From Trichoplax adhaerens (Eukaryota; Animalia; Placozoa), in assembly GCF_000150275.1 (NCBI RefSeq), contig NW_002060946.1, positions 5,165,454 to 5,229,453 of the forward strand: a stretch of DNA of 64,000 nt, given 5' to 3'. Positions 11,453 to 63,498 of the stretch are shown piece after piece (positions within the stretch are counted from its first letter, which is position 1; each line of letters begins with the position of its first letter). The position numbers and the translations under genes are program-made. A model generated the notes under the pieces. The model was given only the letters and a program-made list of their open reading frames with translations, did not search any database and was not told where the DNA came from.

Positions 11453-14400
11453 ATGGAAGCACTATCTATAAAAAATATCGAATCAAATCTTTCCGGTAAG
11501 ATAAGGAACGATATTAATCGATAATCTATAAGTCTAGTCAACTGATCAGACTGTACTGATATAAGAATACACTTTCACAGACATTGTGGGATTAGCTAAT
11601 TGATAATCTGCAAGTCAGTCCAACGGATCAGACTATACTGACAAAAGAATAAACATTTATATAGAATGTTCGTTTAGAATATAATTCATATGAGAACAGC
11701 TTTCTAGATTTTTTACTTTTCCCATCAGTAGTACCCGTGTAACGTCATTTTAACTACCTCAAGTTACCCAAAATAGTAAATATTGGTGCCTTTTTATAAA
11801 TAGTCGTCATATATTTAGTATACAAAATCTATCTCCTAGTGTAGATTAGAACATTGAAGAATGTACAGTAGTCGATAGCTGAATAACTCTGAAAACTAAT
11901 CCATTCTATATTATATAACGTGATTTATACTAATGATCGACTATAACAGATAATAAACGCCAGCGAGAAGCAGTAACACGAGGGGCGATATCAAAAATTA
12001 GTCGAGAGGAATTAGAAGATCGATATTTGAGACTTCATGAAGAAAATCTTGTAAGTTAAATGCCAGTTTATCAAAATATGTTGCACAATTATCATGATTA
12101 TCGTAAAATTTTTAATTAAAATGGTGAAAACAAAATAGTACAAATTTGAATTAATCGATAGAGGTAATACAGCAAGCACAACATGATAATTTCTAATGTA
12201 GTAAGATTTCTATCTAAATTTCATAAATTTATATCGGACTCAATGGAAGGCACTCTTATCGTAGAATCAGTTTAAGGTAAAAATGTTTAACGACGCACTG
12301 CTAAACCAATAATTATATCATTTTATCTTAGATTTTAAAGAAGCATGGGACTAAACAAGAAGAGAAAATTAAAAAGTAAGTAATAAAACTATAAACACAC
12401 ATGATATCCATTATTGTATTAACGCCTATCACAATTTAGTAAATTTAGACCTGGAACTATTATTATTATCATTATTTCGATGTATTCGAAATCTGATCAA
12501 CTTAATGTTATAAACTAATGCACGCAATAGGATGGCAACCAAATTGCTCCGTCTAGCGGCTGATAGGAAGAAGGCAGAAGCCGCAGCAGGTAATCAAATA
12601 TGACTTTGGTTGATCATGCTTCTATTTTCCTAACATAGTTACCACGGTATTTCTCAATTAAACGATAATCAAGGTATAAAATACAGCCCCGACGCAGAAG
12701 AAGCTATGGAAGATTTACGATCAAAAATACGATCATTAGAAAAGCAAAATGATAATTTGAAAAAGAAGGTCAACTACGAGCTAAATAAATAGATCGCTGC
12801 TTATTATGAAAATCATCAGATTCTGATAGGGTGGTTGTTATTAAAAAATTAGATGATCATGATGAAACAAGAATTTGAATCGCGTCCGAAAAGCGTTGGC
12901 CAGTTTAGTTCCGTTAAATCTCGCATAAATACCAATTTGAAAGGAGAAAAAACAATTACATTACAAGACGGGAATGCACAAATACCGGGAATTTGGACAC
13001 AAGGAGAAGGCACAAAGTAAATTATGTCACAAAAATTTTATTTTAGCCCTAACATTTGAATTATATGATAAAAGTGAAACAAATTTACTGTAAGATTACA
13101 TTAAAGTCTTTATAATAATTTCTATAGAAATATGTTTATGACTCTTATATGGTACCAAACGTTCTTTTACTACAGCAAGCGATTTAGTAAATGAGCTGCT
13201 CTTAACCTATCCTTACCTACGGCATCCTTAGTAATTTCACTTACGTCTTTCTCATAACTTTTTCAAACTTTTGTAGAACGGCAGGAAAACTACCCAAAGG
13301 AAGTAAATCTCCCAGGTAAAATATTTGTTAACTCTTTCATTAAAATACTTAACGCCAGGACGTTCATAAAACACTTACAATGTAATTATTTATTGATTAT
13401 ATGACATCTAGAGGACCGGGCGGAAAATCAGGATCAAGGTTATTTATTACCCAAATCTTAATATCCTACAGTACTATAATTTTTAACTATTATCTTTAAC
13501 TTATCAGTTATTGTGATTAATTACTAATAAATAATAAATTAGGCAAAGTATGCTTGAAGAATTAAGACATGATAATAGGACACTGTAAGTTGCTAAACTA
13601 GTTTTCTAATTAAGAAATTCGTCATGATCGTCATTCTCTATTTTTGCGCTATTGCTTACCAACTGCATATATACGCGTATTAATAGGAGCGAATTAGTAG
13701 ATCAACTAAGGCAACAAACATCATTCCTTGAAAATGAAAGCATGGCATTAAAAGAAACGGTAATGAATAAAGTATTGCTATAATAGTTATTATCAAGCAT
13801 AAAATAATGCGTCCAATTAAATTAAAGACTGGCTGGAATCATCAATCATTATCCTTTACGTGACATTAAAAATTTCCCTAACATTAGTTTTATTTCAATA
13901 GCTATAATAATCAGTAGTTATCTTTACCTAGATATAATGTATAACTTAAGATTCTTCAAATAACTAACGAAATTTTATAGAAGAAACGCAAAGGACATGA
14001 CATAAATAGAATAGTTGCTACTCAATCAAATTCTAGAATGTTATAAAATATTGGGCTCTCAATTATATCCAGCAAATTGATGAAAATAATCAATTATCCT
14101 TGGCTTTTGTGGCCTTGAGATATTCCAGTTACCATACATCATTTCTTCTTTAGCTTATATGAATTGCAAAATATTTAGACTCAAATTGTCTCATATAACT
14201 TTTTTATGATGTTTCGAACTACTTGAAATTTTACTACTCGCACAATAATCATTCTCTTCTTGTAATTATAAAGCTTCATAACTTTCGCCTTTTTAAAAGG
14301 ATTTCTTCAACTTATTACTTCTATAGATAAAAGAGAAAGAAATGGAATATGAAACTGCTTTGGATAATATTCGCCAGCAATTATCTAGCACTAAAAGGGC

Positions 14401-17400
14401 CAATATACAAGAAAATGTTGAATTAATACGGCTACAACGTGAAGTTAAAGATAAAGCTACTCAACTGCAGGCAGTTCAAGCTCAATATGAAAATTTAAAA
14501 GAGGTCAAAAAATTTTAAAATATAAATATAGCTTATCGTTTTATTTTGCTATCTTCTATCTCGTTAATAAATTTTAATATTTCTTTCATATGAAATAGAC
14601 GATGACGAAATTTAAAGGTAGTTATGATACCAACAATACCGAAATTGAAAATCTTCAGGCAATGATTTTAGAGGTACTGAACAGTTTATTATAGAAGAAG
14701 GACAAATTAATAGACTTAAAAGCCGTCCAAATATCTGTAACCAAGGTATTTATAAAGATGATAATCCGAAATTTATTAATAGAGGAATAAAAAAAATGAA
14801 GAACTTCAAGCCGATTTAGAAAAGCAGAAAATTATTAATGAAAGACTTGATGAGGTAAACTGATTTGAAGAATAAAGACATTTTAGAAACCATACAGAAT
14901 ATGCACGCGAAAAAATGTATAAATATGGTTTTAAGAATAATTGAAATGACATTATGCTATTTTTCCTTAATACATACAGTATCGCGATCAAATCATGGAA
15001 CTAGAGGCAGAAAAACAGATTTTGAAAGAAGCTAATGAAAAAATTATAAAGAGGTAATTAAATTCTTCTTAGGTGATAATGTTAGATAGATTTGAAGGAA
15101 CTTAAATCAAGATATTACAGTTAAATACGCCGATTAATCTCCGTCATTTTCCTCTTCTAGCACATTTGGTGGTGAACGAGAATTAGAACATCAAAGAGAA
15201 ATTAATGGCTACAAGGTGAAATTGGCTGAAATAGAAACAACCCTAAAAGTTGATTTAAGTGAGAAAGGGGAATACATGGAGAAGCTTAAACAAGAAAGAG
15301 GTAACTAGTATAAGTTTTAAATACCGCAAAATTAATTCATTTCATGAGGATCTTGGAAATATCAAATACGGAAACGTAGTTACAGTATTTTAAGAATGTT
15401 GTTTTAAAATTATATAATTCTTCATTACTTACAGTTTATAGCAAATATACAGGCCTATAAATGATATAATTTCACCTTTTTGACAGAAACGAATCGGTTT
15501 TTAAACGAGCACTGCAATGAATTGCAATCTATGTTTTTGGAGCTTAAAGAAAAGCACGAAGATCTAAGTGGAAAGATGGAATTTTTCACCAAGGTTTGTT
15601 CATTATTTCAAGTTTGCAATATCTTGAAATCGGAGAATCGTTAAAGAGCGTTGTTGGAGATTTTCTTGATGCATTAAACCACGACAATAATTTTAGCCAA
15701 GAAAATGATCACATCATTGCCAAACATGTTAACTTTATCATTCCAACAGGAAAGCGCTGTAGATATCAATGAACTAGAAGAAGCATTAGCATTAATCAAG
15801 GTAAGCACAGCTAGTTCAATATTTCCAAAGCTGTTATTAGCAACGCCTTTGTCATTACAACATTGTTCATGTACTGTAAAATTTACATATATATAGATGC
15901 GTAAAGAAAAAGAAAATATAGAGGATACTGAATTTAATATACGAGCAAAAGAAGAAGAGCTTAAAGGTATTTGCATAATTAAGAGATTATTTAGATCATT
16001 TACTAGTATAACCTATTCACCCTTGTTAATTCAACACTAATATAACCAACAATGCTCCTTATAACAGCATTAAAGCGCGAATTATTAGAAGTCCGAGCAG
16101 TGTACTGTGAAACCGTTAGTGAGTTAGAAAAAACTAGAAATATGTTGTCTATGCAGCATCAAATCAATAAAGAATATAAAAATGAGGTTAGTATACTATT
16201 GAAAAAACTATCTTGAATCCTATCTAACTTTCAAAATAATACTGTAGGTGTGCAGTTTGATAATTAATTAATGATATGCCACAATGATTCATCCAATTCC
16301 TAACAGGTGGATAGTGTAAATAAACGATTCGCAATTGACAAAGAAGAATTTAATGCGAAACTGAAAGAGTATGCTGATCTATTAGATATTCGAGCAGCAA
16401 GAATTAAGGTAAATTGACGATAATTAGGATATTTGAATAAAATTCAGCTTATACCGTCCAGTCACAGCGATTTTAGCCAGTAATTTTAGTGAATAAATGT
16501 AAAATATTTCTTATATTATTACTACAGAAATTAGAAGCACAATTGAGAGATATCGCCTACGGCACTAAACAATATAAACTAGAAGCAAATAAAGAAGAGG
16601 TAAATGATGTAGATATAACTCTTAAATTAATGAAACAGCCCACTGGGTAGTTTATGCTAGCGATCTTATATAACCTTAGCCCTTAATTTTACAGCCATAT
16701 TGACGCTTAATTTCACTTTTCAATTTAAAGGACGAATATGAGGATACAACTGAAGTGGTAGAATTAGAACGCGGTGAAAATATTTTCGAATTTCATGTTG
16801 CCAAGGTAGCCTAATGATATCTAAAATTTCCTAGCAAAATTCGCAAATCATCTTTCTTATATTCATATTAGCTGCTATGTAATCTATCATTATTACCAAG
16901 TTATTAATATCTGTTTATTCTATCCATTCGATTGCCATAGATGGTCCTATCTGACGAAGCCCAAGCAGTATTCGATGATGCTGAGCCTATTACTTTTATT
17001 ACTATTGAATTTTATGAATTTGAAATACAAGCAACTCCTATAGTCCGAGGCTATCGGTATTAAGATATACACCAATAAAAATAGATATTGTGATGATAAT
17101 CCCTTTCTAACCTTTCACTTTCTTTCTTTTCGATTCTATTTTAGACCTGAATTTAATTCGACATCGCAATACGTCGTCAGAGTTGATGATTTTTTCTTGC
17201 GATATTTACAGAAAGTAAGTGCTAATAAGGCAGCGCTACCAGGATTTACAATATACGCCATATCAAGATATTTGCAGCTACTGAAGCAGATAGAATTCTT
17301 AATAGTTAGCCTTGGGTCTGGTCTTTACTTACATGCAACTAATTTTCAGTAGCGAGTAGATTTGTATAGTTAATTTACTACTGGTAGAAATTCTTGATAA

Positions 17401-20400
17401 CTGGTGATTCCTGGTCAGCAATTAGAATTTAGAATTCTGCCCTAGTTAATCCAGAGATCAATATAAGAATTCTAATTAAAGTAGAATTATAGATATTTAT
17501 AATCTTATGAAATGTTATGTTTAAACTATAACTACCGACATATACGACTAGAAGATGTGAAGCTTGAATTCAATTTAGAATTTACCTTCTAGTGATTTTG
17601 ATTACAGGAAATTATGCTTTCTAGGATACTAAAAACTCAATTTCAACTCTATTTGCCTATACTTACAATGATAGGAAAGTGCTACGTTGGAATTACATCG
17701 AGCTTTCGGTACCGATTATCGAACGGTAGCTGCATGCCAAGTCACTTTTAGTGAGATTTTAGAGCATGGAGAAGGTAGAATCCGTGGTACAGCACAATTA
17801 GTCGGCATTGATGGTTCTTCGACAGGATTTAAATTTGCCTCTATCGAATTTTGGTACAGACTACGTGTACCTATGGAACAGGCATTAAGACTTTATAAAG
17901 AACGTACTAAAGCCATTGGCTATGTTGCTAGCAATATTACTGCTAACAAGAGTCAAACTTTCAAAGAAAGTAAAATACCTGAAATCCGCCAACCCTCGAC
18001 ACAAGAAGATTATAATGAGCTAAATGTACGAATTGTACGTTGTACTAATCTACGAACAAGAAGAGGTGGTAAGTCTATATCAGTTTACCCTTTGATATAA
18101 CATGATGGTCTTTTTCTACCAAGAGAGACTTATTCTTTCTTCGATGATTTCTTGTAGATGTTCAACCTTCGCCTTACTGCGTCTATAAATTTTACGAATT
18201 TGATGATCACGATACAACCATTATCTCCAATTCTAATTCTCCCGAGTTCAGCGATGTTCGAAACTTTTGCCTTAACGTGGATGCTGATCTTGATGCCTAC
18301 TTAAAGACAGGGGTAAGTATTTCCACCTCGCTATTAGCAGAATTCAATTAGCGTCCCAAAAGCTATGGATAGTATACTTAACGAGGACAGTAATCTGAAT
18401 CCTTGTCTTCTCTTTCGATATGAAAATCTAGACATTAGATATCTATGTCTTTGACGATAGCGATCCTGAAGATGCAGCTTACCTCGGGGTAGCTAAAATT
18501 CCGTTACTACCGCTAACCCATGACAACCCAATTCAAGGCGTATTCGAATTAACCACGGTTAATAAAGTTTCTACAGTAGTGTTATAGCAACTATTTTAAG
18601 CTGTAGTAATTTTACCAACACTCGAATTAGCCAGTATGGCTAACTTTAATTTATCTGCAACCAATTACAGGGTGATAACTTAAGCAATGGTAACATCGAA
18701 ATTGTGATTAGATGGATGTATACTTATTTGCCAGCAACAGAACCCAGCAAGGTACGTTTAATAAATCAAATCACCAGCAACTATGAAAAGAATATATCAT
18801 GATAGTGCCGTTAGCATAAAGAAATCGATCATCTTATAGTCCTATTTTGACTCATGGCCATGCTTTTCTTGCTTCTTAAATGATAGATGGCGACAAAGAC
18901 GCCAAGTAAAAGGACAGTGCCAGTGGAGTCGAGTATACCGATACGTCAACCATCAGCTTCCTCGACTCCAGGATACCATTTAGCAGCAATGAAAAATAAT
19001 TTATCAGGACCGATACCTATGAAGTCTTTGGATGATGGACAGGATAAAACACTTTTACAAGAAGTACCGATAGAAAATCTCCGATCTTCAGCTCAACCTT
19101 CCATTTCACTGGCAGAAGCAAAACTTTCAGGTAGATTATATTCTATGCTGGATGCTTTTACACTAGCTGATAAATTTATATGAATTAGTAATCCTTTTAA
19201 AGAGGAAATAACTTGCAGAAAATTGCGCTAGGATATGTTAGCAGGCGCAGATCGCTACTTGATATAATTCACGAATTAATGCAAGATATAAAATTGTTTT
19301 AACCGTTAGAAACAACCATTTACTAGTTAAGAATCTTATAAACTGTAGATTTAAAATGAAATTAGTTCATTCTCTGATTTTCAATTCACTACTACAACAG
19401 AACCAAAACGTAGGCCAGCTTCATCAACAACCAGTCACCAAGCTAATATTGTTCATTCTGCACCAGAAACGGAAGAAACTCCCCATGTCGATTCCAATGC
19501 CGATGATGAGATTCTAAAGTCCAAATTGGTTAACGAATTGAAGAAAACTCCACCACTTCTGCAAAGGAAATCGTCAGGATCGATCAGGCTGTTAACTCAG
19601 CAGCCGGTTATTAAAGAAGCGGTTTGTCTATCATTTATGTAAAGCTAATCATAAAAGAAAATATGGATTAATTAATTACCTTGTTGAAATATTTAGGAAT
19701 TAGAAGAGGATATCGATGACGAACAACAAGAAGGATCTGCTGTTCCAATGCCTAAACCTACTCCACAACCCGCTCAAGTTGAAACTGTAAACAGGAAAAT
19801 GTCCAATGATGAAGAAGAATTAGAAGATGATGATGATGAAGAAAATGTAAGATTCCGATTGTAACTCTAACACAGAAAAAATAAGTTAAATACCAAGAGG
19901 ATGAAAAGATAAATATCGCACCTAATTCATTCTGTTGTTGTGTAGTTTGACTCTGATTCCACCGTTACTGGGGAAAAAGATGCAGTCATGAAAAGAAGAG
20001 AAAGTCAAGATTTGAAAAGTAAAAGCGATAAAGACATCTATCATGATGAAGCCGCAAAAGCTGAAGATACTATATTTGGTGACGAAGAGGTAGAAGAAGA
20101 AGACATAGAAGATGAAGACGTAGAAGAAGAAGAAGAAGAAGAAGATGACGAAACTAGTGATGAAGATGTTGTCTTACCTGGTAGTCGTCGAAAATCAGTT
20201 CCAAAATCCAAAAGCCAGGAACTAATTGAAGTTAAGCATGAAGAAGAAATATCTGATGAAGAAGAAAGTGATATTAATAGTCAAAGAGCAAAGATTGTAA
20301 CGCCTCAAGAAGAAGAATCTTCTATTACTGAAGATTCTGAAGACCAGCTTATAGTTTCACCTATGGCCACTATAAATCGATCTACTTCCCTTCCACTCGA

Positions 20401-21764
20401 CCCTAGAATTACGATAACGCTATCAAGCTTGCTATTCCATGATAATGAAGCTGGTCAAGCTGTACTAGATAATCCATCCGTAAAAGCTGTCTTTATTGAA
20501 TATAAATTTTTGGATATTGATTCGGCAGAAACGGAAACGCCAGTCTCCTTACCAAAAGGAACTGCCTATCAGCCCATTAGCTTCAATTTTAGGAATGGTA
20601 AAGAGTCATAATATTAGCTGGAAAAATAGTAGCTATCATATAATATTGCATTCATTTTTGACTAATTCTTGCATCTATTGCAGTCTTTTACTTCAATAAA
20701 CAAAAGGACGCATCAAGAAGAGCATTACTACGAGAAATGTTAAATCCTGATCATGAAACCCAAGGAAGGTTAGCAACTCAAAATTAGGCTATCAAATTTA
20801 CATATTAAGTAGGCTAAGACTTTGGATGGAAGTAACCATAACTAAAATAGTTTCTATCATTTCCTATTTTGCGTTCAATTTCATCGATCGCATTCATTTT
20901 CCTTTATAGTATTATTCTCTCATGTACATCTTACTCATATATCTGCAGGCTTTGGTTTACTGTCGTTAGCGATCCATCAGATGATGATGAAGAACAAGAA
21001 TGTGCTGATGTTGGCTACGCCTATGTTGATTTAGTGGCTGTACGTAGAAACGATTAGAATGCTATTGCTTTAATTAAACTACTATCCCATAATCAGAATT
21101 ATCTTCTCTAATATTGCTATTTAAATTTTCCTGTCCTTGTTGCCCGAATATATAAACTATTCTTTACGAGATATATATTACAGTAACAAATCGATTAGCA
21201 AATCATGCTTGAAGTACTTAATATATACTTATTTATTACCGCAGATATTAGACAATGAAGAGGATGTAATCAACCGAGATGTCGATGGTATGTGATATAA
21301 ACTGCAGTGCTCTTCCGTCTTTATTGCGTTATTTCTGTTGATGTTGCTATTATAAATTCGAGTCATCATGCTAGCTTAGCATTATGTAATGTAATTTCTT
21401 TATTACTTTAACTATCTTGCTAAATAAATATCAGTATTTCAGTCGTAGATGGATTATAAATAATATTACCAAATCCTCGAATCAGTAACGAATACCCTTT
21501 AGTGCTTATACGGTACAACGTTCAGACTGCTTGTGGTTCTACTGTTCCAAGTATAAATTTGACAATTTATTAATGATTAAAATCTGCATTGCAATGAGTC
21601 TTTGAATTACTCAGTCATTAATTTAAAATTCTCATGTTCTAGTCATGAATAGTGAATGCGATGTGCTTGGAACAATTACTGTCACCGTGGAAGCTTTAGA
21701 TGCCCTCATAAGTGTTACTAAAGAAGGCAAAAAGAGCAAGAAAACGAAGAAAGGAAAGCGTTAA
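11453..21764 (+). CDS. RPGRIP1L: RPGRIP1L/fantom (MKS5/NPHP8) ciliary transition-zone protein: coiled coils, C2-N, C2-C, acidic linker, C-terminal RID/C2; about 36 exons
   Basis: Exons include 11453-11495, 11950-12050 (ISREELEDRYLRLHEENL; human VSREELEDRFLRLHDENI), 12332-12375, 12531-12589 (MATKLLRL), 16068-16186 (ELEKTRNML..QHQINKEY), 16731-16805 (ELERGENIFEFH), 17675-18067 (RLRVPMEQALRLYKERTKAIGY), 18158-18312 (QPSPYCVYKFYEFDDHDT), 19946-20597 (ETPVSLPK), 20949-21039 (FTVVSDP..DEEQECADVGYAYVDL), 21643-21764 (TVTVEALDAL, stop). The first exon and start codon are the least certain. Confidence 0.94.
11518..11660. repeat. Degenerate tandem duplication, ~82 bp unit, in RPGRIP1L intron 1
   Basis: aactgatcagactgtactgatataagaata (~11540) vs aacggatcagactatactgacaaaagaata (~11621). 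Confidence 0.7.
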
Positions 21765-23009
21765 TTTCGACAATTACCACATCACCCTAATTTAAGATAA
21801 TAAATCAAATCTAGCTTTAAATTATTATGTACAATCAGATATGCTCTACTCAAATTGGAGGAGAAATGCATAAGATCACAAAAATATATATTCTGGAGTC
21901 ATGTTGCCTAATTTACCTATGAAGCATAACCTGTAATCCAAAAAATCATTTTGACTCTGTCACAAGGATTACTAAGTACGGGATTCATATGTATTACTTT
22001 ATAATTAGTAAATCATTAGTAGATTCCCATAAAAGTAATTCTTTTGCTTAATTTTCTATCTATTGTACTGTATATTTTTAAAATTATGGTATATAAGTTA
22101 TTTATTAGTCGTTATAGTAAGATGAATCCAAGTGATATATTCAAGGTTATAATCAAAATTTCTGTTTAAGAGAACAGTTCGACCAATTTATAATTTTAGT
22201 GCACTAAATAAATGTATTATTGACCAAATAACCTATCCCACCTTAAGCATATATTAGTGGATTATCTACAATATTATACTGTTCGATAATTAATATACAT
22301 ATATATATATAATCGACATTGATTAGATAGTTTTTATTGGATCTCTACTAGAGATCGGTGGCAATAAAATGTAATTATTGTATTTTGTAGATACATTAGT
22401 AGATTTCTACAATATCATTCGATTCGATAATTCTTTACATAATCAGCGATAATTAAATAGCTCAATAATTTAAACTATCATTTGTACAGAAATTTTATAA
22501 TCAGCAAATCGTAATCGTAGCTGTCTCATCGGAGTATTTTATATTTTAGATTGTTAAATGAAGGTATTTTCTTTGCATCTAGCTACTGCATAAGATTCAT
22601 TTATATTTCATGGTAGCAACGTGCTCTGACTTAAGTTAATAAATATATAGGATATGAAATACATCCTACATGCACCTATGATATAAAAATATTGTACTAC
22701 AATTTTTTTCATTAATTATCTTTAATTAATAAATAATTTCGCCAATTACGTGATTACTAGCAAATTTATGCTCAATATCTTATTTAAACCGGACTGGTTG
22801 AAATTTTTTAGTCTTGTTATAATTGCTTCCTTCCTAGCTAGTTATAATTGGATACTATACTTTCCATTCTCAAGTACTATATAACTCTCTAATGCACTAT
22901 AATATGAATTACAAAAATTTCTGAAATAGATTATTTGCAGTACCGGTGCGCAAGATCGATCATCGATAACAATTATTTCAATTTATGATACTAGTGGTAA
23001 AATTCCGCA

Positions 23010-23175
23010 AGTGTAGTTATATCATGTTCTCAGTAAGCAAATGTAAGTATTTAGCCCGCACATCCTAATATTCTAGCAAACATCAACGAAATTCATCATC
23101 AGTTATATCATGTACACAGTAAGCAAATGTAGAAATTTAGCTGCATATCCTAAAAGTCTGGCATATGTCAATGAA
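23010..23175. repeat. Degenerate tandem duplication, ~86 bp unit
   Basis: agttatatcatgttctcagtaagcaaatgta (~23015) vs agttatatcatgtacacagtaagcaaatgta (~23101). Confidence 0.75.
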
Positions 23176-42555: not shown

Positions 42556-42749
42556 TCAAGAGTTCACTTGAAAAAAGCAATGGATCACGACCGAGCAAGA
42601 GACGATTTAAACTTGTTTCTCTATGAAATGATAATTATATCCGTAATAACATAGGTATATTATTTAGTGCACTTGCATTATTTATTGTATACTTCGTTTA
42701 AGCTATGCTACTGATGCATGTGTACAAAGAATTTGATGCATAATAACTG

Positions 42750-44380: not shown

Positions 44381-44389
44381 CTCTCTTAT

Positions 44390-44900
44390 GAGACACTCGT
44401 GGGAAAGCTAACAAAGGATAATTTGGATTTTAAGTTTCAAATTGTCATAACAGGCTTAAAAATATGCAATGACATAGTCACCTTGTGAGCTATTGAGCTA
44501 TCTAGTGAGATGTTTTACGAGAAAATTAATAAAGTATAGGCTAAATCTTAAACTAAACTGTCTCTTACAAGGTTCAAAAGTGTGCAATGACATGGTCATC
44601 GAGCATGGGAAGATCAATAAATTTATATTCTAAATTTTAAATTAAACTATCATAAAGTGGCTCCAAAACAAGCTAAGAGGCAGTCAGCTAGGCAGATATG
44701 CAGTTATATACCCACGGGGAAAAATTAATAAATATATAATCTGGATTTTAAGCGATCGCTAAAGGTTCAAAAATAAGCAATGGCATCGTTAGCTGGCCAA
44801 ATATCTAGGTAGATGCCCAGGAGAAGCCAAGAAAGAACATTGTTGATTCTAAATGAAATTGTCATCAAAGGTTGAAAAATAAGCAATGATATAGTCAACT
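44390..44900. repeat. Degenerate tandem array, ~100-120 bp units
   Basis: aaggtt.aaaaat..gcaatg..at.gtca at ~44452, 44569, 44762, 44869. Confidence 0.7.
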
Positions 44901-50900: not shown

Positions 50901-53900
50901 ATAAGCCACCTTTATTACGAAGTAATGAAATTTAAGCATTGTAAAGTCAAGATGAATTTAATTTACTTTCAACAACTTAAGACGTGAACTGGTGCGAAAA
51001 ATTACAACATTATATATAAAATATCTTTTAATAGCTTCATGCTAACATCCTGTGTATGATATTTTATAATACACCAGCCTATAACATAACCCTATGCTAT
51101 AACAACTTTATGACGGCCATTAAATAGGTTTACCACTTAACAAGATCCAATGTTGGACCTTATATTTTGCAATCGTCTTGAGCGACTACTGTATGCTAAC
51201 AACAAGCGAAATATTGTCAAGTTACCAATATTTTAAATTACACTTTTAGTCTTGCTTAGTATATATTTATTTATTATATATGGATATGAAAGCATAAAAA
51301 AATCAGAAGTTAAACGTACTGAATGATGTTTTTGTTCCTAACACTTGATAATGCTTAGATACTGGCTCTGCCTCATCATAGATAGAATAATATTGAAATG
51401 CAATCTTAAAGCACTAGTTGAGATATTTTGTAACCGCAACCATAATAATATAAAATATGATTGCCACTTTTATGGCGAAATCATGTAATACAGGTAATAT
51501 GTTTATGCCAAAATCAAAGCAATGGTTGTAGGGAGAGGTGGACGGAATTTTAACAAAGAAGTACTTGAATAAAAGTTTAATCAGTTAATTGAAGACTCTA
51601 GTGTTTTAAACAGAATGTTATTACATAAATTCTCGCTGTAGCTATTACAACCTAACTGAATTTTGAAAAAAAGAATTAAGTATTATACTTTACATGCTAT
51701 AAATTTCAATTGAATCGGAAAAAAAATAATTTGACTACTAGAGATAATTTAAAAAGGCAATGGATATCTTAACTCAAACAAGGAACAATTCTGTAATTAG
51801 AAATTATTTTGTGCTAACATGTATAATTCTCTAATTGTAAGAAATTTTATGTTAGTAAGTACAATTCCCTTTTGATATAATCCGGATGAATGAAACTAAT
51901 GAGGATAATCTTTAAGAGAATGAACCTTTCTTGTGACATACATTAACCTTACATAGAGAAAAATTTTAAAATTTATTACTATCTAATGTATAATAAACAG
52001 AATGTATGATTTGATAGGGATTCTTTTACGGCATGATTAGCCCTCCTTTTAATCAATGGTAAAAGTCAATATAAAAATAGTTTATTATTAAATTTTCGGT
52101 AAAGAATGAGTTGAAAATTCTCATGAGTAATGCAAAAGAAAAACGTTGATAAAATACAATCAATTTAATTGATTGTATTGAGATCAAGATGATGGATAGA
52201 TATCTAACTATCCCATTACTTGATACTTGACGTCCTTGATGTGTAAGTCATTATTTATCGCTTAATCTATGTTAATGTAGAGAAATAACATAGTAGATTG
52301 ATTGTATTTTTATTGACTAGGCAACCGTTGTGGATTCGATTGATAAACATGTAGTTATTGTAAATTGATATGTAATCGATGTTGAAAATAATGTACAATC
52401 ATCCCACTCTGACAATTTTTAATGTCGATTCAATTCTTCTTTCTTCTGACATTGATTTTGTTGCGAACTACAATAACCTATGGTAGCAAGGGGCAAATAA
52501 TAGTTTGATTAATTATTGATGATAATATTATCAGCTTGAGTTGTCATTAAATCATTTATTCATTACCGGGATAGAAAATGAAAATATTCTAAACTTTTGA
52601 TCATTCTATGTGTCATGTCTTACTATCACCATGTTTTGCTATCCTGTTGTCCTGATGAAACTGTATCCATAACAACAGGGTGGATTCGATTCATTCAATG
52701 GAGAACAAGGGAGTTGTTGTCATCATTATCATTATTAGTATGCGGCACATCAATCAGAATTTACTTTTCAATAGAATAGAAGGAAATAATAATCATTATG
52801 GTATATTCCAGACATGAATGCCGGTCTTGTTTAAGAATTTTAGATTGCATCTACTACACAATACCTAATTACGTTGTCCATGTCGATGATAATAGACATG
52901 TGCGTTGAATGTCATGGCTTGTCTTCTTCATACGTATTAGGCTGATTATCGTCGATTAATCTATGTATGGAATTATTCAAATCTTGAATTTCTTTCTATT
53001 CTATCTATTCTATGATTGACAGATAGAATGAAAAGGAAACATGATATGGAATGAAAATGTCATCTATTGATGATAAATGATTGAACATTGTCTATAAAAT
53101 GAATCAATGCAGCAAATAAAAATATAGGATTCAAATTGATGTCATCTATGGGTAAAAGACATCATCAATTTTCAATGCCTAATTATCATTAAGTAAAAGA
53201 CAAAAAAATCAGACACAATAAAACTCAATAGCACATGATGTTGATAACACTGGGAAAATTAACTTGAATAATCATATCTGACTATTGTATTAAAAGGGCA
53301 TATTAGAATATTCCTTCATTAGGAGACTGTCGATCAAAGTCTGCCTCTGTATTTTCCCATTATTTATTTCGATCGATCTAAATATAGTAGTTAGGAAAGC
53401 ATATTAGAACAGTAATGCTTATGAATACTTTAGTGAAAAATTAATTAAACTAGGCTTGACAAATGTTCATCTTAGTCGACCACTCAGCAATCAGTTTTTT
53501 TAGCTATTATGTATCCAAATAAGGCATAGATTTGTTATAGAATCATCATGTTTCTTCAAATGATAATCCATCAACTCACGTACCGGTACTCCTTGTTAAG
53601 TAATTATTAAATCATATTAATTATAAGGTGAATTTACTGTTTATCGACTATGTGACTATCATTAAAGAAGTAGCACCTGATAAAATTATTAAAGGCAAAT
53701 TTACATCCATGTCCATGTTGTTCAACAATAACATATTGCATATAATCCAATGATGATAGGACTCCTATTTTTATCTATATAAACTGTACATTTTTTGTTG
53801 TTATTGTTGTGAAGTTATTCTTAGTCATTGTAAATACCAGTAATATCTTGAACGGTTTCACGTTCATCTTTTTTTCCTATAGAATTAAAAAAAATAGTAA

Positions 53901-56900
53901 ACTTTCACAACAACATCATCAATAATTACAGACTTTAATACAATAGTATGATATCATCACTAGTAGTTGCTCTTGCTGTAAGCGTTCTATTGCTATGGAA
54001 TGTACAATTGTAAATAGCAACATAACTAGGGTTGAAATCAATGGACATCATAATTATACCACATCAAAGAAGAAAAAATGAACACTACGTCAACTATACT
54101 GATAGGTTTAGGAAAACTAATAATGAATATGTAGATAAATCAATCAACTTTTAAAAAGCAAATAATGTGAAAAGCATCCATAAGTCTACGCTACGCACGT
54201 GGATATAATGGATATACTTTGAATATTGTGACCACGGTATTAGAAATTAGAAGGAAATAATGTCAATTTTAATATTATAATTCCGGTTTATTTATTCAAC
54301 TTCAATCTTTCAATTCTATTATGTCTCTTTTTTCCAGACAATTGACACTCTTGTAAGATGCATAAAAGTTATTTTGTCTCATCTTATTATTGTCTGAAAA
54401 TAACTATTGAATTTCTATCTCTAAGTACAAAATAAGATTGTCTTGATCATATGTCGTACATGATTATTTCCTTGTCCAATTTTTTAATGGAATTAAAGAC
54501 CATAGATGGAAGACAATATAATACAACATAAATAGAAGATTAGAATTCTTTTTATTGAATATTTTTAAAATGCATTACGTAAATAGTGGAGGTTAAACTC
54601 TTTGCATTTTTTTATCTACCTCAGAAACATCCGGTAAGAAGAATGCAATTTTCGCTCTTCGTCTATGTTCTATCTATTCTTATAGGATAGTTCTTTTCAT
54701 CTCTATCAGCCTAACGGAATCTCGTTTGTGTCTACCTATCAATCATTCTTCTATTTCTTATCATATTCTATCGTATAGTATCCTGAGTATTATCATCAGT
54801 TTTGATGGCGGACCTTTAATATTATTAGGAGATACATACAGCTATAACTTAATCGATGTGGTTCATATACACGTCCACAGTGTTCTTTCAATCACCTAGA
54901 CTTTACACAGTTTGTTACTATTGACGACAAATTAAGACATCGATCTGAACTAGTCTAGACAGTTTGAATTCATATAGTTAGTTGAGCAATAGTAACAATA
55001 ATTATTATATCGATCATGTAATGAATCCATTTTCCAGTAATATCCAAGTCTATCAAATATTAATTATCATAACATGTTGAACCGTTTAAATTCTGGAACT
55101 TACTATAGCAAAATTATTAAGTGTGTTATGGTGCTACCAATAAGTGTCTATAAATTTAAAGTATTGGTAATAAATAATTTTTCTGTAGTTATATACAATA
55201 CTCAATATAAGCTATCAGATCAGTCTAATGCACCGATAAAACGTCAGGATTTGAACTTATAATTGTTGTTTAAATGAATAACATACCAATTGAGGGTTTG
55301 TTGACTACTAATTTATTTATTCGCTTTACAGTAGTCCGATATGTCCGTTACGCAGTAGTATACCTAGCCAATACTAGTTCTTGTATACGAATAATACTTG
55401 AAATTTTTCATTATTAATTGATAATGTCATTTGAAATGATTCTTATTTCTCACCGATATAATATCGTCTGTCTCAAAAAGCTCCCCTTGCAAATATACTT
55501 CTACATAGACTATAAATCTATTCCTAAAATCGCTCTAATTAATTGTGCTGCTTGCTTTAAAATGTCTATGTCTGCCTTTATTACATGGCAGTAATACAAT
55601 ATAAAGTCTAGCTGAAAATTAGATCTTCCATATTATGTATAAGTATTAATTAGCTGAAAGTGACGGTACACGTTTCTATGTATTTTTGAACTATTATTAC
55701 GCCAAAGGAATTCTTACTACGCCATGCTGCCATTAATCGTAGCCCATTTATAATTTTACCATAAAATAATAATGATTACAGTAAATATACTATTATTTAA
55801 GAAATAATGTTAATGGTAACGTAGAGCGATACCGTATTATTAAAGAATATGATTAGAGCAAACGCGTCCGTCGGAAATTTAAAACGTTAATATTTCTTAG
55901 CAACAACAGAAATCGTGGATGCGATAGTTGATAAATGATGCAAATGAATACTGATAACTGGTTTATTTATTTATAATTTTGATTCGATTCGAAATGATGG
56001 CTCTGAATCGTAATAAAATATAATTCACAGAAAGCTATCTGATTAGACTTAGTTCATTTTAATTTCGTTCATTTGTTCTCCATTTTTGATCATCAGTCAG
56101 AATATTCTAAATCTAAATTAAAAAAAATTATTCTATTCATCAGCATTATTTACTATAATTTCGAATTGTCTAGAATACGCTTACTCCTACTTATCTATTG
56201 ATAACGGGTATTGGTAATAAATGGTCTATATTTTGTAGTTTATATAAAACTTTCAAAGTTTTTGAAATATGTGCTAATGCATCATGTAACAGTTACGGGA
56301 AAAAGTGTAGAATTCAAAAAGACAAGATCAACTACTGTAGAACTTGATCAATTCGTTTATTAATACAGATTAGAACAAATTTTAATTGAATAACTGACAA
56401 GTTCTTCCTCTATGTAACATGATTAAATTATATATACTCTTTCATCATAGCACTCTTTCTATATTGCGTCATTTTATAATCATCAAATCTTACAATTTTT
56501 CTTATTTATTTTACATCCATCAATTAATAATGTATTGGATAGTATATTGCTGCTGACAAAAATAAACAAAACAAAAAAATTGAAAACAAAAAATGACTCA
56601 ATTTAAGTTGAATGGATGTTTTTTATTCTCAATCCACTATTAAATATGGTAGGTTTGAATAAGCTGAGATAGAGTAGACATTGCATATTCAGGCTAATTC
56701 AACTAAATAGGGTAATTATTAGCTATTATAACTGTTGTGTCTGAAAAATATAGCACTGTCTGGTTTTTCGAATATCAATCATACTTAATAAAATGAAATT
56801 TCTGTTATCATGCGGTAATTCATTCTAGTTAATAAATAATAATGATAACAAATAATAATGATATCAATAATATTGCCTTTCGGTGAAGTAGATTTTAAAA

Positions 56901-59817
56901 AGAATTTAGACGAGAATCAAAGATATCTCGGCAATAAATGAATAATTGAATATGTTTAAAATATATACTTCATAACCATTTTATTATCCATCCGTCCAGT
57001 TTAAAATTCTTGCTGAAGTTAAGATCAATAACCTGGACAAAATAACTGATTTAAATTCCGACAGTGACTAATGATTATTTATAACAGATTATTTATTAAG
57101 GCTACTTGGAAATAGTAGGGGATTTTACTTATTTTTAATACAGGTTGAAAATAAAAACCTATTAAATAGTTCAATTCTTGATTGATGACAGATCATTTAT
57201 CTTGATTGTCAACACTGTCAGATGAAATTTTCATCCAAGTGGCTGTTTTTACTATTAATAAAAATAAGTTAGATGTAAATGAATGAAATAACTTCAAGAG
57301 CGGAGTATGTTAATACTTTATAAAATAGATATAATTTCATAAATATATTTTTTTTCTAATTTTTTTATCTACTCTGTATTATTCATTATAAAAATAGTAT
57401 CTACTTTGATTCTATTTTACTAACATCTTAAACGATCAATATTGGGAACAGCAACTTCATATTGGGTATTGATAATGGGCATCATGAAATTGATTACAGT
57501 AATCTTACTATAATGATGGCGTAAGAATAATATCATTATATTGTTAGTTGTGAGCGTATAAAGTAAGTACATCATTGCATCTTTGCCAAGGAGCCAGCAT
57601 ACACATAACATGAGCATATTGTGAACTATATGGATCGTAGTCTACAACTATCTTAATATGGTCTAAATCATATAGAATATATTCTGATGTCAAGATTATT
57701 ACCATCTGATTTCATGAAATTGATCAATTACCACCACATTGGTTTCAACAATGCATTTTTTAATACGGCTTGATTTTTTCTCCGTGCATATTAATAAGTC
57801 TCTATATTGTCTATTACTAGTAGATAAAACTAAAAAGGATAAAATAAAATAATAAGTAAAATAGATAATTAAATTGGAAAGCCTGTAAGGTTACGAATTT
57901 ATTTAATGATATTGTACATATGTACAGTTTTATCATATAATACAATTTCCTAGAAGGAGTATAGTGCGCGTAATAAGGGGTGTAGTTGTAAAAAAAACTA
58001 TTGCAATGCGAGTGGAGCCGTATGCTAGTATTTGGCCAAAGTGCGAGAATATCACGTATGCATTTAGTATGACTTGAAAGGAAAGTGTTTTACACCCAGT
58101 TCCCGTTGAGATCAGATGGTATTCATTTAGAGGGGTAATTTAATTAGGGTAGGCTTCCTTATGTTCAAGATGATTGAATTAGTAATTTAGTACTCCATAT
58201 TGATGCTAGCTGATGTTGTGGCATTGTTTATTTAACTAGGTATATTAATACCAACCTACTATCCTCCTTTAATGTATTACTGTATTATCTTGCTAATTAT
58301 TTACTCAAATGAGTCAGATGCTTGTATATAGCTAGAGCTATATTAATATTATTCTATATCGTATTTGTATTTATCTACCTATTAACATACCGGATGTAAT
58401 CATCTCTTACAAGAAATAGTGACCGTCGTATAACTATGCCATGATGGCCTCCCATGAGGGCGATTTTATTCGATTTTATTGGTATATATAAGACGTATAC
58501 TTAAAAACAATATGTATGACGAGGGATAAATCATAATTAGCCTATGGAAATTAATCATGATCGATTTGGGGAGGTTGCCACTGGCTAAATGGTTGTAACT
58601 ATACCAGGAACTCAATGCAACCTTTCTTATACGGTTCAAACTAGGGGAGAAAAAAATGTAAAACAGTACACTTTCTGTAAAGTTACAAAAGTGAGGCTAA
58701 TCACCATGTCTTCTTTAATTATCAATGGGAACTGAATCAGTTATTTCTACAGAAATAGAATCTAATTTCTAGTAGCATATATTGACTGAGAAGCCGTGTG
58801 TAATGTAATGGTCGTATTTTGTGATTGTTACTATTGATTTATAACTAACTATTGATGAAGGCATCTTACAATCAGGAATGACTCATCGCTTGAATATCAA
58901 CGCCGGTCACGAAGCAAGAATACAAATTGTGTCATTGTATATCATCATTATCCCATTTAGCCTAAATATCTAATATAGTCATGCTAGGGTTCTTTGCTAG
59001 CGTTAACCATGACTATAGGACTATTTATGCTCGATGGTACAACTATGTCGGTATCATGTCCATTGTAAAATACTGGTACATGCCACATTGACAAAAATTA
59101 ACCATTTCATTCTAATCCCTCACAGTGGCTGATTGAGACGATAGCCAGCGCGCTATCATATTAGTCATCATTTAATAATCAAATAGCTCACGTGTACTAT
59201 ATGATGGATTATCTAATATATGCGAATGGACGATGAAGTCGTCAAGCTATTTCGACGCTATGCTACTATCGACCATCACCTACCATACCATGAATTTACT
59301 ACGGTAAGGCTTGTTCCACGCTTCGGACTACTAGCCAGACAGGGTGGCATAATCCAATTTTTCTAGATTATTATAAATCGATCGAAGTACTTTAGAACGA
59401 ATAATCATGCAGATTAACGGTAATCAAAGTAAAGGAAAGGGCATCAGTTAACTATATTATCATTTTGTAGTTCTCATTCATTTGATAGTTTCACTGTAGT
59501 TAAGGTCAAATACTGTCTCCAACTGCGCTTGTAAATCGATTTTAATCATGGAAATAACACAATATTGTAGGGCTGTAACAAAACCAATAGGATGGTCATA
59601 AAGATGATGACATCGATGAGACTGTTTCGGAGTTTGGGACAACATCATCATCTCCATATCATTCATTGACTGGATTGTTCATATAAAGGTATTATCAATT
59701 ATAATTATAGACATAAGGAATGCGCTAGATACTTTGGTCATGTTGGCGTATCATTATAGTCCGATGCACTATGGTAACATCTGTGTTGTACTGCATATCT
59801 TCTGTAGCGCTACAAAT

Positions 59818-59834
59818 GGGGGGGGGGGGGGGGG
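59818..59834 (+). repeat. G17 homopolymer
   Basis: 17 consecutive G in AT-rich context, ~1.46 kb upstream of the Irx ATG. Confidence 0.9.
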
Positions 59835-60337
59835 AAAGAGAAAAAAAGCAGCAAGGCATCAATAGGCAAATAATTAGTGTATTACTAGTCATCAATGTCG
59901 AAATGCAATCCAGACACAAATCGCCATCTTAAACAACACTACTAGAAACACACGTCTGGTTGCATACATCGACCTACTGTCTAGAAAATAAAATTGAATT
60001 TGTACCATTCCATTGAAAAAAATGCCAAAGTCGGATATTGACGATGTCTATTATTTATATTAGCATTACTCTACTTTTGTAAACAGTTGTTGTAATTGTT
60101 GCACCTATTGTAAGGGCTTATTTTTCAATGACCGCTCTGGTGATCATTACATAATTTGCAACATGTAGATGACCATTCAGAATACGAAGTACATGTAGTT
60201 AATTAGGAAAACAATGGGTACTAAGGCATGACATGTACATAGTATTTGTGTATGCTGACAAATTATCATTTGACAACAAATAGAAATATTAAGGATTGCA
60301 CTAGTAGACATTGCATCAAGTCAGGACGATGTACAGA

Positions 60338-60355
60338 CTCTCTCTCTCTCTCTCT
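60338..60355 (+). repeat. (CT)9 microsatellite
   Basis: ctctctctctctctctct, overlapping the start of the palindrome TACAGTATACTGTA. Confidence 0.85.
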
Positions 60356-60659
60356 ACAGTATACTGTATGTAGACTCCATTTGGATTGGTATCGACTTTC
60401 CAACATGAATTTCGCTATCTTCAATCGATTCTCATCCTTCCATCTTCTTTCCATTCTACATAACTACGATTGGATCATCGTCATTCAGTATCATGAATAA
60501 CATATTTGTCAACTATTACTACCATCGATTCACTGACTAACTGTAGTCGATGTTGGGAGTAGAACCATCCATCATTTAATAACCCGAAAATAAAATCTAG
60601 TCGGAAATAAGGCGTTGATTGTTGTCAATGAAACAATAATGGAGATGTTGTCGTAATTC

Positions 60660-61000
60660 TTTATGCCAAGACAGCCATTCGTATAAAAAGTGTACCCATG
60701 TAGGCGGAGCTTGCTAGAGTGAAATGCACCCATTTAGGCGTACGCGCTGTCATGGATGTCGTGTTATGATTTTGATTGATTCTATTATACACGGCGAGTA
60801 ATACGGCAGTAGCCAATCATTTAGCCTAAAATCATGTCACAATTTTCAACTCGCTTTGTGATTGGATGATTGAACAGAAAACGTTATGTAACTACATGTG
60901 TCACGAACAATTCTACCAGACAACTATGGTTGCTTAAATACCCGGTGTGTTATGTACCAATCTTCAAAATTTGTACAATCTTTGACTTTGCATCATCGAG
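60660..61000 (+). promoter_or_regulatory. Putative Irx proximal promoter
   Basis: TATAAAA (60682), GGCGGAGC (60703), CCAAT (~60813), ATTGG (~60861), near-duplicated 16-mer TGYACCCATKTAGGCG (60691, 60725), pyrimidine-rich leader before ATG 61293. Confidence 0.45.
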
Positions 61001-61292
61001 CAACATCTTTCAATCTACTTTCTCTCTCGCTCTCTAGCGATTTGTTATCGTTCTAGTAGACTCAGTTTGTGTTATTTTGCACAATTTTACTTGCATTTCT
61101 TGCCGTTAATTCATCAATTGACGATTTACTAGTGATTGCAATCGAAACATTGATTTGCTATTACTATTTTCCGGGTTAAATTCATCTTTGAAAGGAAAAA
61201 TTTGCGGAAATTCCTCCTATCTCAATACAACTCGATTTGGATCAATCTCAACTGAATTCTTCTAGACACTATCCAACGTACCAGTTTACAAA

Positions 61293-63498
61293 ATGTCTTA
61301 TTCTCAATTTGCTTGCTCATTTCCTCCACAAGTAAGTATGAAGAATGATTCTGTTTAGTAGCTAATCTCTTCTACAGCGAATGCAATCATTTTACGTGTA
61401 CTAGTAGGCTTAGGAACTTAGTCAAAATTTCCAGACAGGCTGTGCTGCATTTCCAGACAGGACATGTCTGATTACGACTACAACCTGATTAATTGATAAT
61501 TTGATCAATTTTAGGTTTTAATGCATGGCCATACTCATAGCCCAAACCACTTCTGTAGTTCCGTGCCTCAAATGACCGGCTCTACCAACGTTTGCCAATG
61601 CCAATTGGAGAAACTTTACATGCAACAGAAGTTATCACCTACGCCATATCAATCAATGATGCATTCCCATCAATGCACTGCCAATGGATTCCCTAGCGCA
61701 ATTTCAAACAACAGCGACAAGCCAATGATCTATCCTTCTATGGTGAGTCTCTATTGCTATGCTTATTAGCCACGTAGGCTAATTTTTTATTGTAACCTTG
61801 AAATTATCGACTTCTACGAGTATAAATCACGTTTAGTAGTTGGAAATCATCAAAGTTTTTGCTTGTGTATTAAAAATATTATTTACCATTGATTCCCGAC
61901 ATCAACTGTCGTAAAATTATGCAAATTAGCTACTACGGGCAAGCGCAGTTGATATCCCGACAACCGGCATTGTCTACTCTACAGTATGTTAAATAACATT
62001 ACACAGTATTACAGTACTACAGAGTACTAGTATTCGATTTACGGTATAATAGATTGTATCGTAAACACTCATCGATTGGCTTGATTGACAAGAGTGATCT
62101 CATTCTTCGACTAAGACTAACATGTAGGATACAGTACTTACGTTTACTACTACTGGTATAGAGGTTGCGATCGCTTTGCTAGCCGACCCGTCTACTACTT
62201 TACTTCAGTTTGTCTGGTTTTTAAAAATTGTCTGGAAGGCTGTCCAGTTGTCCCGTCCACACTGTCGGTTGAGTCAGCCTTAACCCTTGATAGTCAGACA
62301 GCGAGTACACAGTGCATATGCTATGATTAAAAAAAAAAAATCGAATTGCCTCATTTGACTAATAAAATCTTTCACTGATTCGTCCACCTATTTAGAATTC
62401 GCCTGTACAAGGAGATATGAAATGTGGTAACTCATCCATTGATGCCTGCTACCAATGGTACATGTCTCAGGCTGGTAAATACCCAGTTGGTCATGTAGAT
62501 GGCATTTCTAGGTTCGTCTATTATTTATGCTAATGAATTAATCATAGATATTGCAGTGTCCTATACTAAGACAGTTGCATACGCAATAACCTAGTAACGT
62601 ATTGAATGATGAATAGAGTTAATGCACATCGTCACATAGCAAAACGAATGAATATTATAGCTTATTTAAGGTGATATAGTGAAATGTATTTGTAACAATT
62701 CTCGTCTTCTTTACCTGCAGATTTAACCCAATCGATTTAAATAATGCCAGACGTAAGAATGCTACTCGTGAAACTACCAGCATACTTAAAGCTTGGTTAT
62801 ATGAACACAGAAAAAATCCTTACCCTACCAAGGGAGAAAAAATTATGTTGGCAATCATGACAAAGATGACATTAACGCAAGTTTCGACATGGTTTGCTAA
62901 TGCTCGTAGACGCCTTAAAAAGGAAAACAAAATGACTTGGTCACCAAGAAATCGCACTGGTGAGGGCAGAAAGAACTCTGAAGACGATAGCCAAGATGAA
63001 GATCTTAACGATGATGACGATGATGATCATACGAGATCAGATGGACTGAGTACATGTGCCGATTCTCCTGCAAGCAGTGTCATGGATGATAAATCGGATT
63101 GTGGTCGTCATAGTCCTGAACTCAAACTTGCGCAAGAAATTGCTCGTAGACAAGAGAAACCAGCTATTTGGTCACCAATCACAGCTTGCTCAAAACCATC
63201 TGTACCTTGTACTACTACTACTACTTTACCGAGTAGCAACACTAATATGGATTCACCGGTTAAATCATTAAGGAAATATGTAGATGGTGTATTCCATTTA
63301 AAGGAGAATGAAGTTGAAATTAACGTAGAAACTAAGGTAGAACCAGCTTCTCCCGAGTCTCCAAAGGAAAAGGTTTCTGTTAGCGTTGAAATGAAATCTG
63401 AAAAAGAAGAGGCAGTACAGGAGAAATCCGAATCTCAATATCGTGAATTTGACGCAGCGCTAGCACTTACTACTCTGTCTTCATCTAGACAGTCATAA
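61293..63498 (+). CDS. Irx: Iroquois-class TALE homeodomain transcription factor, 4 exons, 386 aa
   Basis: Exons 61293-61331 (MSYSQF, Irx-type N-terminus), 61515-61742, 62396-62511, 62721-63498; 1161 nt in frame. Homeodomain [64 protein letters not shown], acidic stretch, IRO box KPAIWS. Confidence 0.97.

Follow-up and report, generated by a model that had tools for sequence, protein, structure and literature searches.

Does the company kept by an Iroquois (Irx) gene reflect shared regulation, or is it simply a matter of descent? The question is raised by a locus of the placozoan Trichoplax adhaerens, in which an RPGRIP1/RPGRIP1L-like gene, a CA8-type carbonic anhydrase (CA) gene and an Irx gene follow one another, with a gene-poor interval of 28 kb, here called the desert, in front of Irx. 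The window analysed is the whole stretch of 64,000 nucleotides (G000:C1411:5165454-5229453), which contains no N and comes from a genome of 105.6 Mb, assembled into 1,414 contigs, whose GC content is about 32%; for gene context, it was extended by 40 kb on each side, to 144 kb in all. A first-pass annotation had proposed one ancestral block, kept intact in Trichoplax and possibly held together by Irx enhancers lying in bystander genes. The account that we favour, with moderate confidence, is that of three independent genes, among which Irx would possess its own regulatory flank of 28 kb, while the likeness to the human map would derive from linkage-group descent and slow local scrambling.

Irx, its upstream desert and the RPGRIP1-type gene

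The Irx, CA and RPGRIP1L-like genes were analysed exon by exon rather than as joined protein models, and the exon matches confirm the initial observation that the three are consecutive, all lie on the plus strand and have no gene between them. The Irx gene, which codes for a TALE homeodomain protein of the Iroquois class, was traced as four coding exons (61293-61340, 61515-61748, 62387-62515 and 62719-63498, plus strand) by tblastn with the Irx protein of Trichoplax sp. H2 (P0001), to which they show 94-100% identity; this protein is named 'Iroquois-class homeodomain protein IRX-6 [Trichoplax sp. H2]', and the match of the last exon to it reaches 100% identity. The homeodomain lies at about 62749-62922 on the same strand (Homeobox_KN, 68.8 bits in the window) and displays the TALE loop 'NPYPTKGEK', while an IRO-like motif, 'EKPAIWSP', is also found in the last exon. 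Cnidarian Irx proteins match this exon with 42-46% identity over 94-95% of its length. Among the nine Homeobox_KN matches of the genome it is the best one, with 72 bits versus at most 48 for the rest, and we take the window gene to be the sole Irx-type gene of the genome.

The desert extends over 28.0 kb (33251..61292; GC 26-34%), from the stop codon of the CA gene, which ends at 33250, to the Irx ATG at 61293, and is presumed to be the cis-regulatory landscape of Irx. It contains 87 open frames of at least 50 amino acids, none with a credible Pfam family, and neither an Rfam family nor a tRNA was found in it; the interval noticed in the first pass is therefore real in terms of these three signals. 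It is about ten times longer than the other intervals nearby (28 kb versus about 3 kb); 3.4 kb separate the RPGRIP1L-like gene from the CA gene and 2.9 kb separate Irx from the next gene. One trait by which regulatory blocks are recognised, a gene for a developmental transcription factor flanked by gene-poor DNA, is found here, with Irx and its 28.0 kb. The annotation of Trichoplax sp. H2 places in the desert a single spliced gene of 93 amino acids without Pfam match, at about 57194-58404 on the minus strand (L004:5916-7126), 3-4 kb 5' of Irx; this gene could be an artefact or reflect a non-coding transcript. The H2 assembly, which is independent, matches window positions 51279-64000 (12.7 kb) at 99.3% nucleotide identity, and because of this identity the comparison between H1 and H2 is uninformative for conserved non-coding elements.

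Four decayed tandem arrays are concentrated in the first half of the desert: one with a period of about 160 nt at 34785..35396 (repeat families D2 and D3), another with a period of about 183 nt at 41166..41688 (families D4 and D5), a 113-nt tandem repeat identified by TRF at 43027-43307, and an array with a period of 88-118 nt at 44450-44911 (family D1). Between 40000 and 46000 both the GC skew (+0.045 to +0.075) and the AT skew (+0.045 to +0.067) are positive, as they are over the transcribed RPGRIP1L-like gene, which could mark an unannotated plus-strand transcript within the desert.

The RPGRIP1L-like gene occupies at least 12634..21764 on the plus strand and was recognised through Pfam, PDB and genome-wide matches. 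Its identity stands as first annotated; its 5' limit is uncertain, the gene being traced here from 12634, whereas the start was first placed at 11453. Coiled-coil-like N-terminal exons at 12.6-16.6 kb are followed by two C2-C2_1 exons (PF11618; 17675-18097, with 50.7 bits, and 18148-18348) and by two RPGR1_C exons (PF18111; 19946-20608 and 20851-21054), both families scoring above the Pfam cut-off; thus, the coiled-coil N-terminus, the C2 domain and the C-terminal RPGR-interacting domain of RPGRIP1/RPGRIP1L proteins are all present. The sole PDB matches are 2yrb, 'Protein fantom', i.e., the C2 domain of RPGRIP1L (54.2 bits), and 4qam, the RPGR-interacting domain of RPGRIP1. The frame of the last exon runs to 21761, with the stop codon at 21762-21764. 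Only one locus of this type exists in the whole genome, and the gene is therefore considered a pro-orthologue that predates the duplication into RPGRIP1 and RPGRIP1L. The spacer that separates it from the CA gene (21765..25156, 3.4 kb) holds only short, low-complexity open frames.

Identity of the carbonic anhydrase-related gene

Between the spacer and the desert, a CA8-type acatalytic alpha-CA is predicted at 25157..33250 on the plus strand from Pfam matches of single exons, a CA8 profile, PDB matches and splice sites. Its first exon (25157-~25291) starts with the ATG at 25157 and ends at a GTGAGT donor; splicing to an AG acceptor at about 29703 preserves the frame, so that WNYTAKG is continued by PSRWNDYFP. 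Beyond it, at least seven exons were found by Pfam and the CA8 profile, at ~29704-29888, ~30591-30725, 30939-31037, 31451-31519, 32554-32661 and 32852-33250, plus a short one near 31730-31785; Pfam Carb_anhydrase matches cover 29667-29909, 30555-30728, 30939-31040, 31451-31528, 32536-32661 and 32846-33247. At the positions of the zinc ligands the predicted protein carries S94 and H96, within 'HCSFHWG', and Q119, within 'MEVQLLHWN'. It combines an alpha-CA fold with the replacement of His94 and the retention of His96, as in CA8, also known as carbonic anhydrase-related protein (CARP) VIII. Indeed, the description of CARP VIII (PMC2873310) as an acatalytic alpha-CA without His94 and with His96 agrees with the window gene, whose highest similarity is to CA8; the Trichoplax protein differs in having S94 in place of R94 and, in addition, Q119.

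Position 94 is variable among CA8 orthologues, where R, T and I occur, with S in Trichoplax. Likewise, Q119 does not represent an unusual second loss, since oyster and acoel CA8 (P0256, P0231 and P0361 were compared) have the same 'PMEVQL', whereas H119 is retained in deuterostome CA8. The same residue had first raised the suspicion of a CA10/11 identity, which was rejected: 'EVQL' is found in oyster and acoel CA8 too, and overall similarity favours CA8.

The possibility has to be considered that the gene is a placozoan-specific duplicate of a catalytic CA of the cytosolic type, in which the zinc ligands were lost independently; this would remove the 8q12 leg of any comparison with the human map. 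Two catalytic Trichoplax paralogues of this type, with 'QFHAHWG' and H119 kept, lie at G000:C1410:2209523-2211567 and G000:C1414:2258466-2263750, and they share exon structure and motifs with the window gene. The profile built from 97 CA8 proteins separates them, however, since the summed exon scores are 254 bits for the window gene (49.7, 63, 33, 11.5, 70.1 and 26.7) and 212 and 208 bits for the two paralogues; in general, domains other than CA8 remain at or below 212 bits, while bilaterian CA8 proteins reach at least 398. Human CA8 (2w2j) is the top PDB match for exons B (43.6 bits), C (25.2 bits) and D (59.0 bits, versus 46.1 for the next), whereas exon A prefers CA2 and CA13. In a search of 1.84 billion representative proteins with exon D, tandem multi-domain CAs topped the ranking by summed score, and the window's own protein was not among the matches; of the nine best full-length single-domain matches looked up, seven bear the name 'carbonic anhydrase-related protein' (vertebrates and oysters), and the other two are a duck 'carbonic anhydrase' and an unnamed acoel protein. 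All nine are among the CA8 orthologues or match all exons as these do, which argues against the duplicate. In the opposite direction, amphioxus CA8 finds its best match in the Trichoplax genome at window exon D, with a sum of about 146 bits versus about 122 for the next locus.

Phylogenetic analyses gave less uniform results. With a reference set that lacked named vertebrate CA I-VII and X-XV, exon-wise trees put four exons (B, C, C2 and D) within the CA8 clade or next to it, while A and E cluster with the catalytic Trichoplax paralogues, as a duplicate would. In the constrained likelihood test the sum over exons favours the CA8 grouping by 23 log-likelihood units; the fast heuristic searches are noisy and the exons are in conflict, exon B giving -20. 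To these data are added the CA8 signatures in the aligned exons, which also speak against a duplicate: the residue other than His at position 94, 'PMEVQL' with Q119 as in oyster and acoel CA8, 'WNTSLY' as in amphioxus, and 'IFRYPLSIS'. Finally, a CARP VIII of T. adhaerens (XP_002111595.1, 348 amino acids) had already been listed by Aspatwar et al. 2010 (PMC2873310). Taken together, the PDB matches, the protein search, the profile, the signature residues and this listing bear out the CA8-like assignment of the first pass. The window gene is thus very probably a CA8 orthologue, as far as sequence comparison can tell, and an origin as a lineage-specific duplicate is unlikely.

The same authors concluded that protostomes are without CARP VIII (PMC2873310). 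A search with an oyster protein returned CA8 orthologues in molluscs, a brachiopod, an annelid, nemerteans, a priapulid, echinoderms, hemichordates and amphioxus; contrary to that statement, orthologues named 'carbonic anhydrase-related protein-like' (P0256, P0284-P0309 and P0370) are widespread in protostomes, and CA8 is found also in an acoel. In Trichoplax, a further tandem cluster of CA genes is located at C1414:3.635-3.660 Mb.

The wider neighbourhood and linkage in other animals

Over the 144 kb, the gene order is: two SLC6/SNF transporters, a DUF3754 gene, two Roadblock/DYNLRB genes, a PH-domain gene on the minus strand, RPGRIP1L, CA8, the desert, Irx, Lon, Tmemb_55A, ACIN1 and Derlin. 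The two SLC6/SNF genes are in tandem on the minus strand (L007:157-1965 and L008:6810-9622), 25-40 kb upstream of the window; the Roadblock/LC7 dynein light-chain exons are also in tandem, on the plus strand (L010:9274-9528 and window 1957-2139). Downstream of Irx, at 2.9 kb, comes the Lon protease gene (L011:4419 to L012:289, equivalent to about 66.4-74.3 kb of the window), and its product ends with -SRL, a peroxisomal signal, which makes it of the LONP2 type. ACIN1 was identified by a match to PDB entry 6g6s (54.9 bits). Simple repeats of the (TACAG/TACTG)n type are found in intergenic DNA near gene ends, at window 10650-10706 and at L010:7399-8208, L011:700-2350, L012:9313-9622 and L013:474-1206; they yield spurious 'TVLYCTVLY' open frames of 80-146 amino acids.

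On the human map, LONP2, RPGRIP1L, IRX3/5/6 and SLC6A2 are at 16q12, DYNLRB2 at 16q23 and DYNLRB1 at 20q11; CA8 is at 8q12, TMEM55A at 8q21 and DERL1 at 8q24, while RPGRIP1, TMEM55B and ACIN1 are at 14q11. About 6 Mb separate LONP2, at 16q12.1, from IRX3, and SLC6A2 flanks the human IRXB cluster, whereas SLC6A3, SLC6A18 and SLC6A19 flank IRXA, with SLC6A3 beside IRX4 at 5p15. The linkage of SLC6 and Irx might also be old, judging from these positions and from a match at the level of the SLC6 family only. The human counterparts of the Trichoplax neighbours thus fall mostly on 8q, 14q11, 16q and 20q, as would be expected of an ancestral linkage group; that they belong to one paralogon is inferred from the human map, on which it is also reasonable to regard 16q12, 8q12 and 14q11 as paralogous segments.

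The region mirrors neither 16q nor the TOX-CA8-CHD7 segment in any simple way. No HMG-box (TOX-like) gene is present within 2.6 Mb. Neither the FTO_NTD domain nor the BRK domain, a marker of CHD7-9, was found in the genome; the controls of both searches were also without signal, so these absences are weak.

Linkage was examined in other animals within flanks of 10 kb on each side of the CA8 or Irx orthologue, where the Trichoplax exons of RPGRIP1L, CA and Irx served as tblastn queries for partners. CA8 is accompanied in these flanks by no RPGRIP1-like or Irx exon in Haliotis, Branchiostoma, Saccoglossus, Lottia, Patiria and Pecten, and Irx by no CA or RPGRIP1-like exon in the octocorals Xenia and Dendronephthya and in Haliotis. 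The neighbours found instead are diverse. CA8 has EnY2 downstream in Haliotis rufescens, zinc-finger genes upstream in Branchiostoma, a RINGv/EGF gene upstream in Saccoglossus and, in Patiria miniata (L017:1-2391), an upstream gene for a Ras-family GTPase, read as RGK-type; no neighbour was called in Lottia and Pecten. Irx is followed by a DEAD-box helicase gene in both octocorals and preceded by UPF0172 in Xenia, while no neighbour was called in Haliotis. The human RGK genes GEM (8q22), REM2 (14q11), RRAD (16q22) and REM1 (20q11) mark the same four-fold paralogon.

On a larger scale, CA8 (19.77-19.81 Mb) and Irx (10.89-10.94 Mb) of Haliotis share one chromosome of 32.8 Mb, at a distance of 8.8 Mb, and in Gigantopelta the proteins of both genes report the same longest contig (59,883,994 bases). 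Together with the results on the flanks, these data suggest that CA8 and Irx tend to be on one chromosome without being neighbours. The retention of linkage across distant lineages, by which regulatory blocks are also recognised, was thus not observed, in terms of immediate adjacency at CA8 and Irx loci.

Origin of the linkage and comparison with known systems

In the account favoured here, the locus is an ordinary piece of placozoan chromosome, in which the RPGRIP1L-like gene, of the ciliary transition-zone type, CA8 and Irx are unrelated single-copy genes arranged head to tail, and the 28 kb region 5' of Irx most likely holds the regulatory DNA of Irx itself. The likeness to the human RPGRIP1L-FTO-IRX3, CA8 and RPGRIP1 regions would come from a larger shared linkage group, slowly scrambled in placozoans, and no regulatory constraint tying the three genes would have to be invoked. 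Indeed, since the desert could hold all the regulatory DNA of Irx, enhancers inside the neighbouring genes are not required. Conserved linkage groups, the general phenomenon most likely reflected at this locus, are well known and have already been described for Trichoplax. Some observations, however, weigh against this account. RPGRIP1L and Irx are near neighbours both in Trichoplax and in vertebrates (PMC9002814, PMC5585340), a coincidence more specific than membership of one linkage group. The linkage comparison was built on CA8 and Irx loci, the RPGRIP1L orthologues of the other animals not having been located, and with flanks of 10 kb in genomes 4-20 times larger than that of Trichoplax it addresses immediate adjacency alone. 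Moreover, RB_A, SPT16, Vps35, Nic96 and BBS2, whose human orthologues are 16q or 14q11 markers, lie on other scaffolds; the local cluster of the 16q12 type (LONP2, RPGRIP1L, Irx and perhaps SLC6) is therefore not simply a pattern of the whole scaffold.

The absence of those markers from the scaffold, which makes the local match less trivial, would suit a history of passive inheritance, in which placozoans and the vertebrate ancestor would have inherited one and the same neighbourhood of RPGRIP1L and Irx, together with CA8 and perhaps also LONP2 and SLC6; it would have remained unbroken in these two lineages without any constraint and been lost elsewhere. The LONP2-type Lon gene at 2.9 kb from Irx and the tandem SLC6 genes 25-40 kb upstream of RPGRIP1L resemble the arrangement at human 16q12 and 5p15, although the SLC6 support is a family match of putative orthology. 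That the same two unrelated genes are close in Trichoplax and in vertebrates (PMC9002814) speaks for such a history; on the other hand, only two lineages are concerned, and the probability of chance within one linkage group was roughly estimated at 5-20%. In addition, the arrangement was seen neither beside CA8 in six bilaterians nor beside Irx in three species. The order with respect to transcription also differs, Irx being downstream of RPGRIP1L in Trichoplax, while human IRX3 lies upstream of RPGRIP1L on a shared strand. Passive ancestral microsynteny is thus a tentative alternative, to which we assign a lower probability than to linkage-group descent.

That difference of order also tells against an ancient regulatory block, in which Irx enhancers in or beyond CA8 and RPGRIP1L would have been under selection since the metazoan ancestor, until the block was split by differential loss after the vertebrate duplications. 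Such a scenario would be in keeping with the three genes lying on the same strand with no gene between them and with the large desert that adjoins Irx; the desert, however, sits between Irx and its supposed bystanders, and could contain every enhancer. Blocks of this kind are recognised by their retention across lineages, and none of the eight other invertebrate loci examined shows such adjacency; the only relative compared, H2, is 99.3% identical, so that no evidence of conserved non-coding sequence can be obtained from it. The proposal of the first pass, one block kept intact with Irx enhancers in bystander genes, finds no support in these data: no adjacency in the invertebrates examined, a distance of 8.8 Mb in Haliotis, an order unlike the human one, and no TOX-like gene within 2.6 Mb. 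It is likewise improbable that a block was held around Irx by long-range regulation, with remnants at human 16q12 (LONP2, RPGRIP1L, IRX3/5/6 and SLC6A2), 8q12 (CA8) and 14q11 (RPGRIP1). Irx is admittedly a classic target gene, and FTO and RPGRIP1L are bystanders of the vertebrate IRXB (IRX3/5/6) block (PMC5585340, PMC9002814). The established bilaterian partner of Irx, CG10632/Sowah, is instead not linked to it in Trichoplax or Nematostella, as reported by Kerner et al. 2009 (PMC2674049). Because retention is not observed, Sowah is unlinked and the order differs, an ancient regulatory block is considered quite unlikely.

In the literature search no paper was found in which RPGRIP1L or CA8 is described as a neighbour of Irx in an invertebrate, and none of the gene names is present in the supplements of PMC8851819; the RPGRIP1L-CA8-Irx linkage appears to be unreported, and its significance is unproven. 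If the closeness of RPGRIP1L and Irx were truly ancestral, the architecture of the human FTO/IRX3 obesity locus would be older than Bilateria, and this regulatory architecture could be tested in Trichoplax on a miniature scale of 50 kb. At present, the value of the locus is more modest and consists in a clean annotation of placozoan Irx with its unusually large 5' desert, in a supported placozoan CA8 orthologue and in a defined hypothesis, which chromosome-scale genomes can settle.

Three known systems offer a term of comparison. The vertebrate IRXB block (PMC5585340, PMC9002814) resembles the Trichoplax locus in its gene-poor Irx flank and in the closeness of RPGRIP1L, which is functionally unrelated and on the same strand as Irx. 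In Trichoplax, however, CA8 lies between RPGRIP1L and Irx, Irx is single and not part of a cluster, the scale is 50 kb versus 2 Mb, and FTO was not found, in an FTO_NTD search whose control was without signal. The bilaterian Irx-Sowah pair (PMC2674049; Maeso et al. 2012, as presented in PMC5585340) is similar in that an unrelated neighbour is proposed to be kept beside Irx for regulation, but that linkage extends to many bilaterian phyla and includes conserved elements that were tested, whereas Trichoplax and vertebrates are the only animals in which the RPGRIP1L-CA8-Irx linkage is seen, and vertebrates show just a part of it. Closest to the account favoured here are the ancestral linkage groups shared by Trichoplax and bilaterians (PMC8809688): the human counterparts of the neighbours lie on one set of paralogous arms, and Haliotis CA8 and Irx are on the same chromosome, although 8.8 Mb apart. 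Linkage groups are silent on adjacency, whereas at this locus two to three genes are immediate neighbours, two of which are close to each other in human as well.

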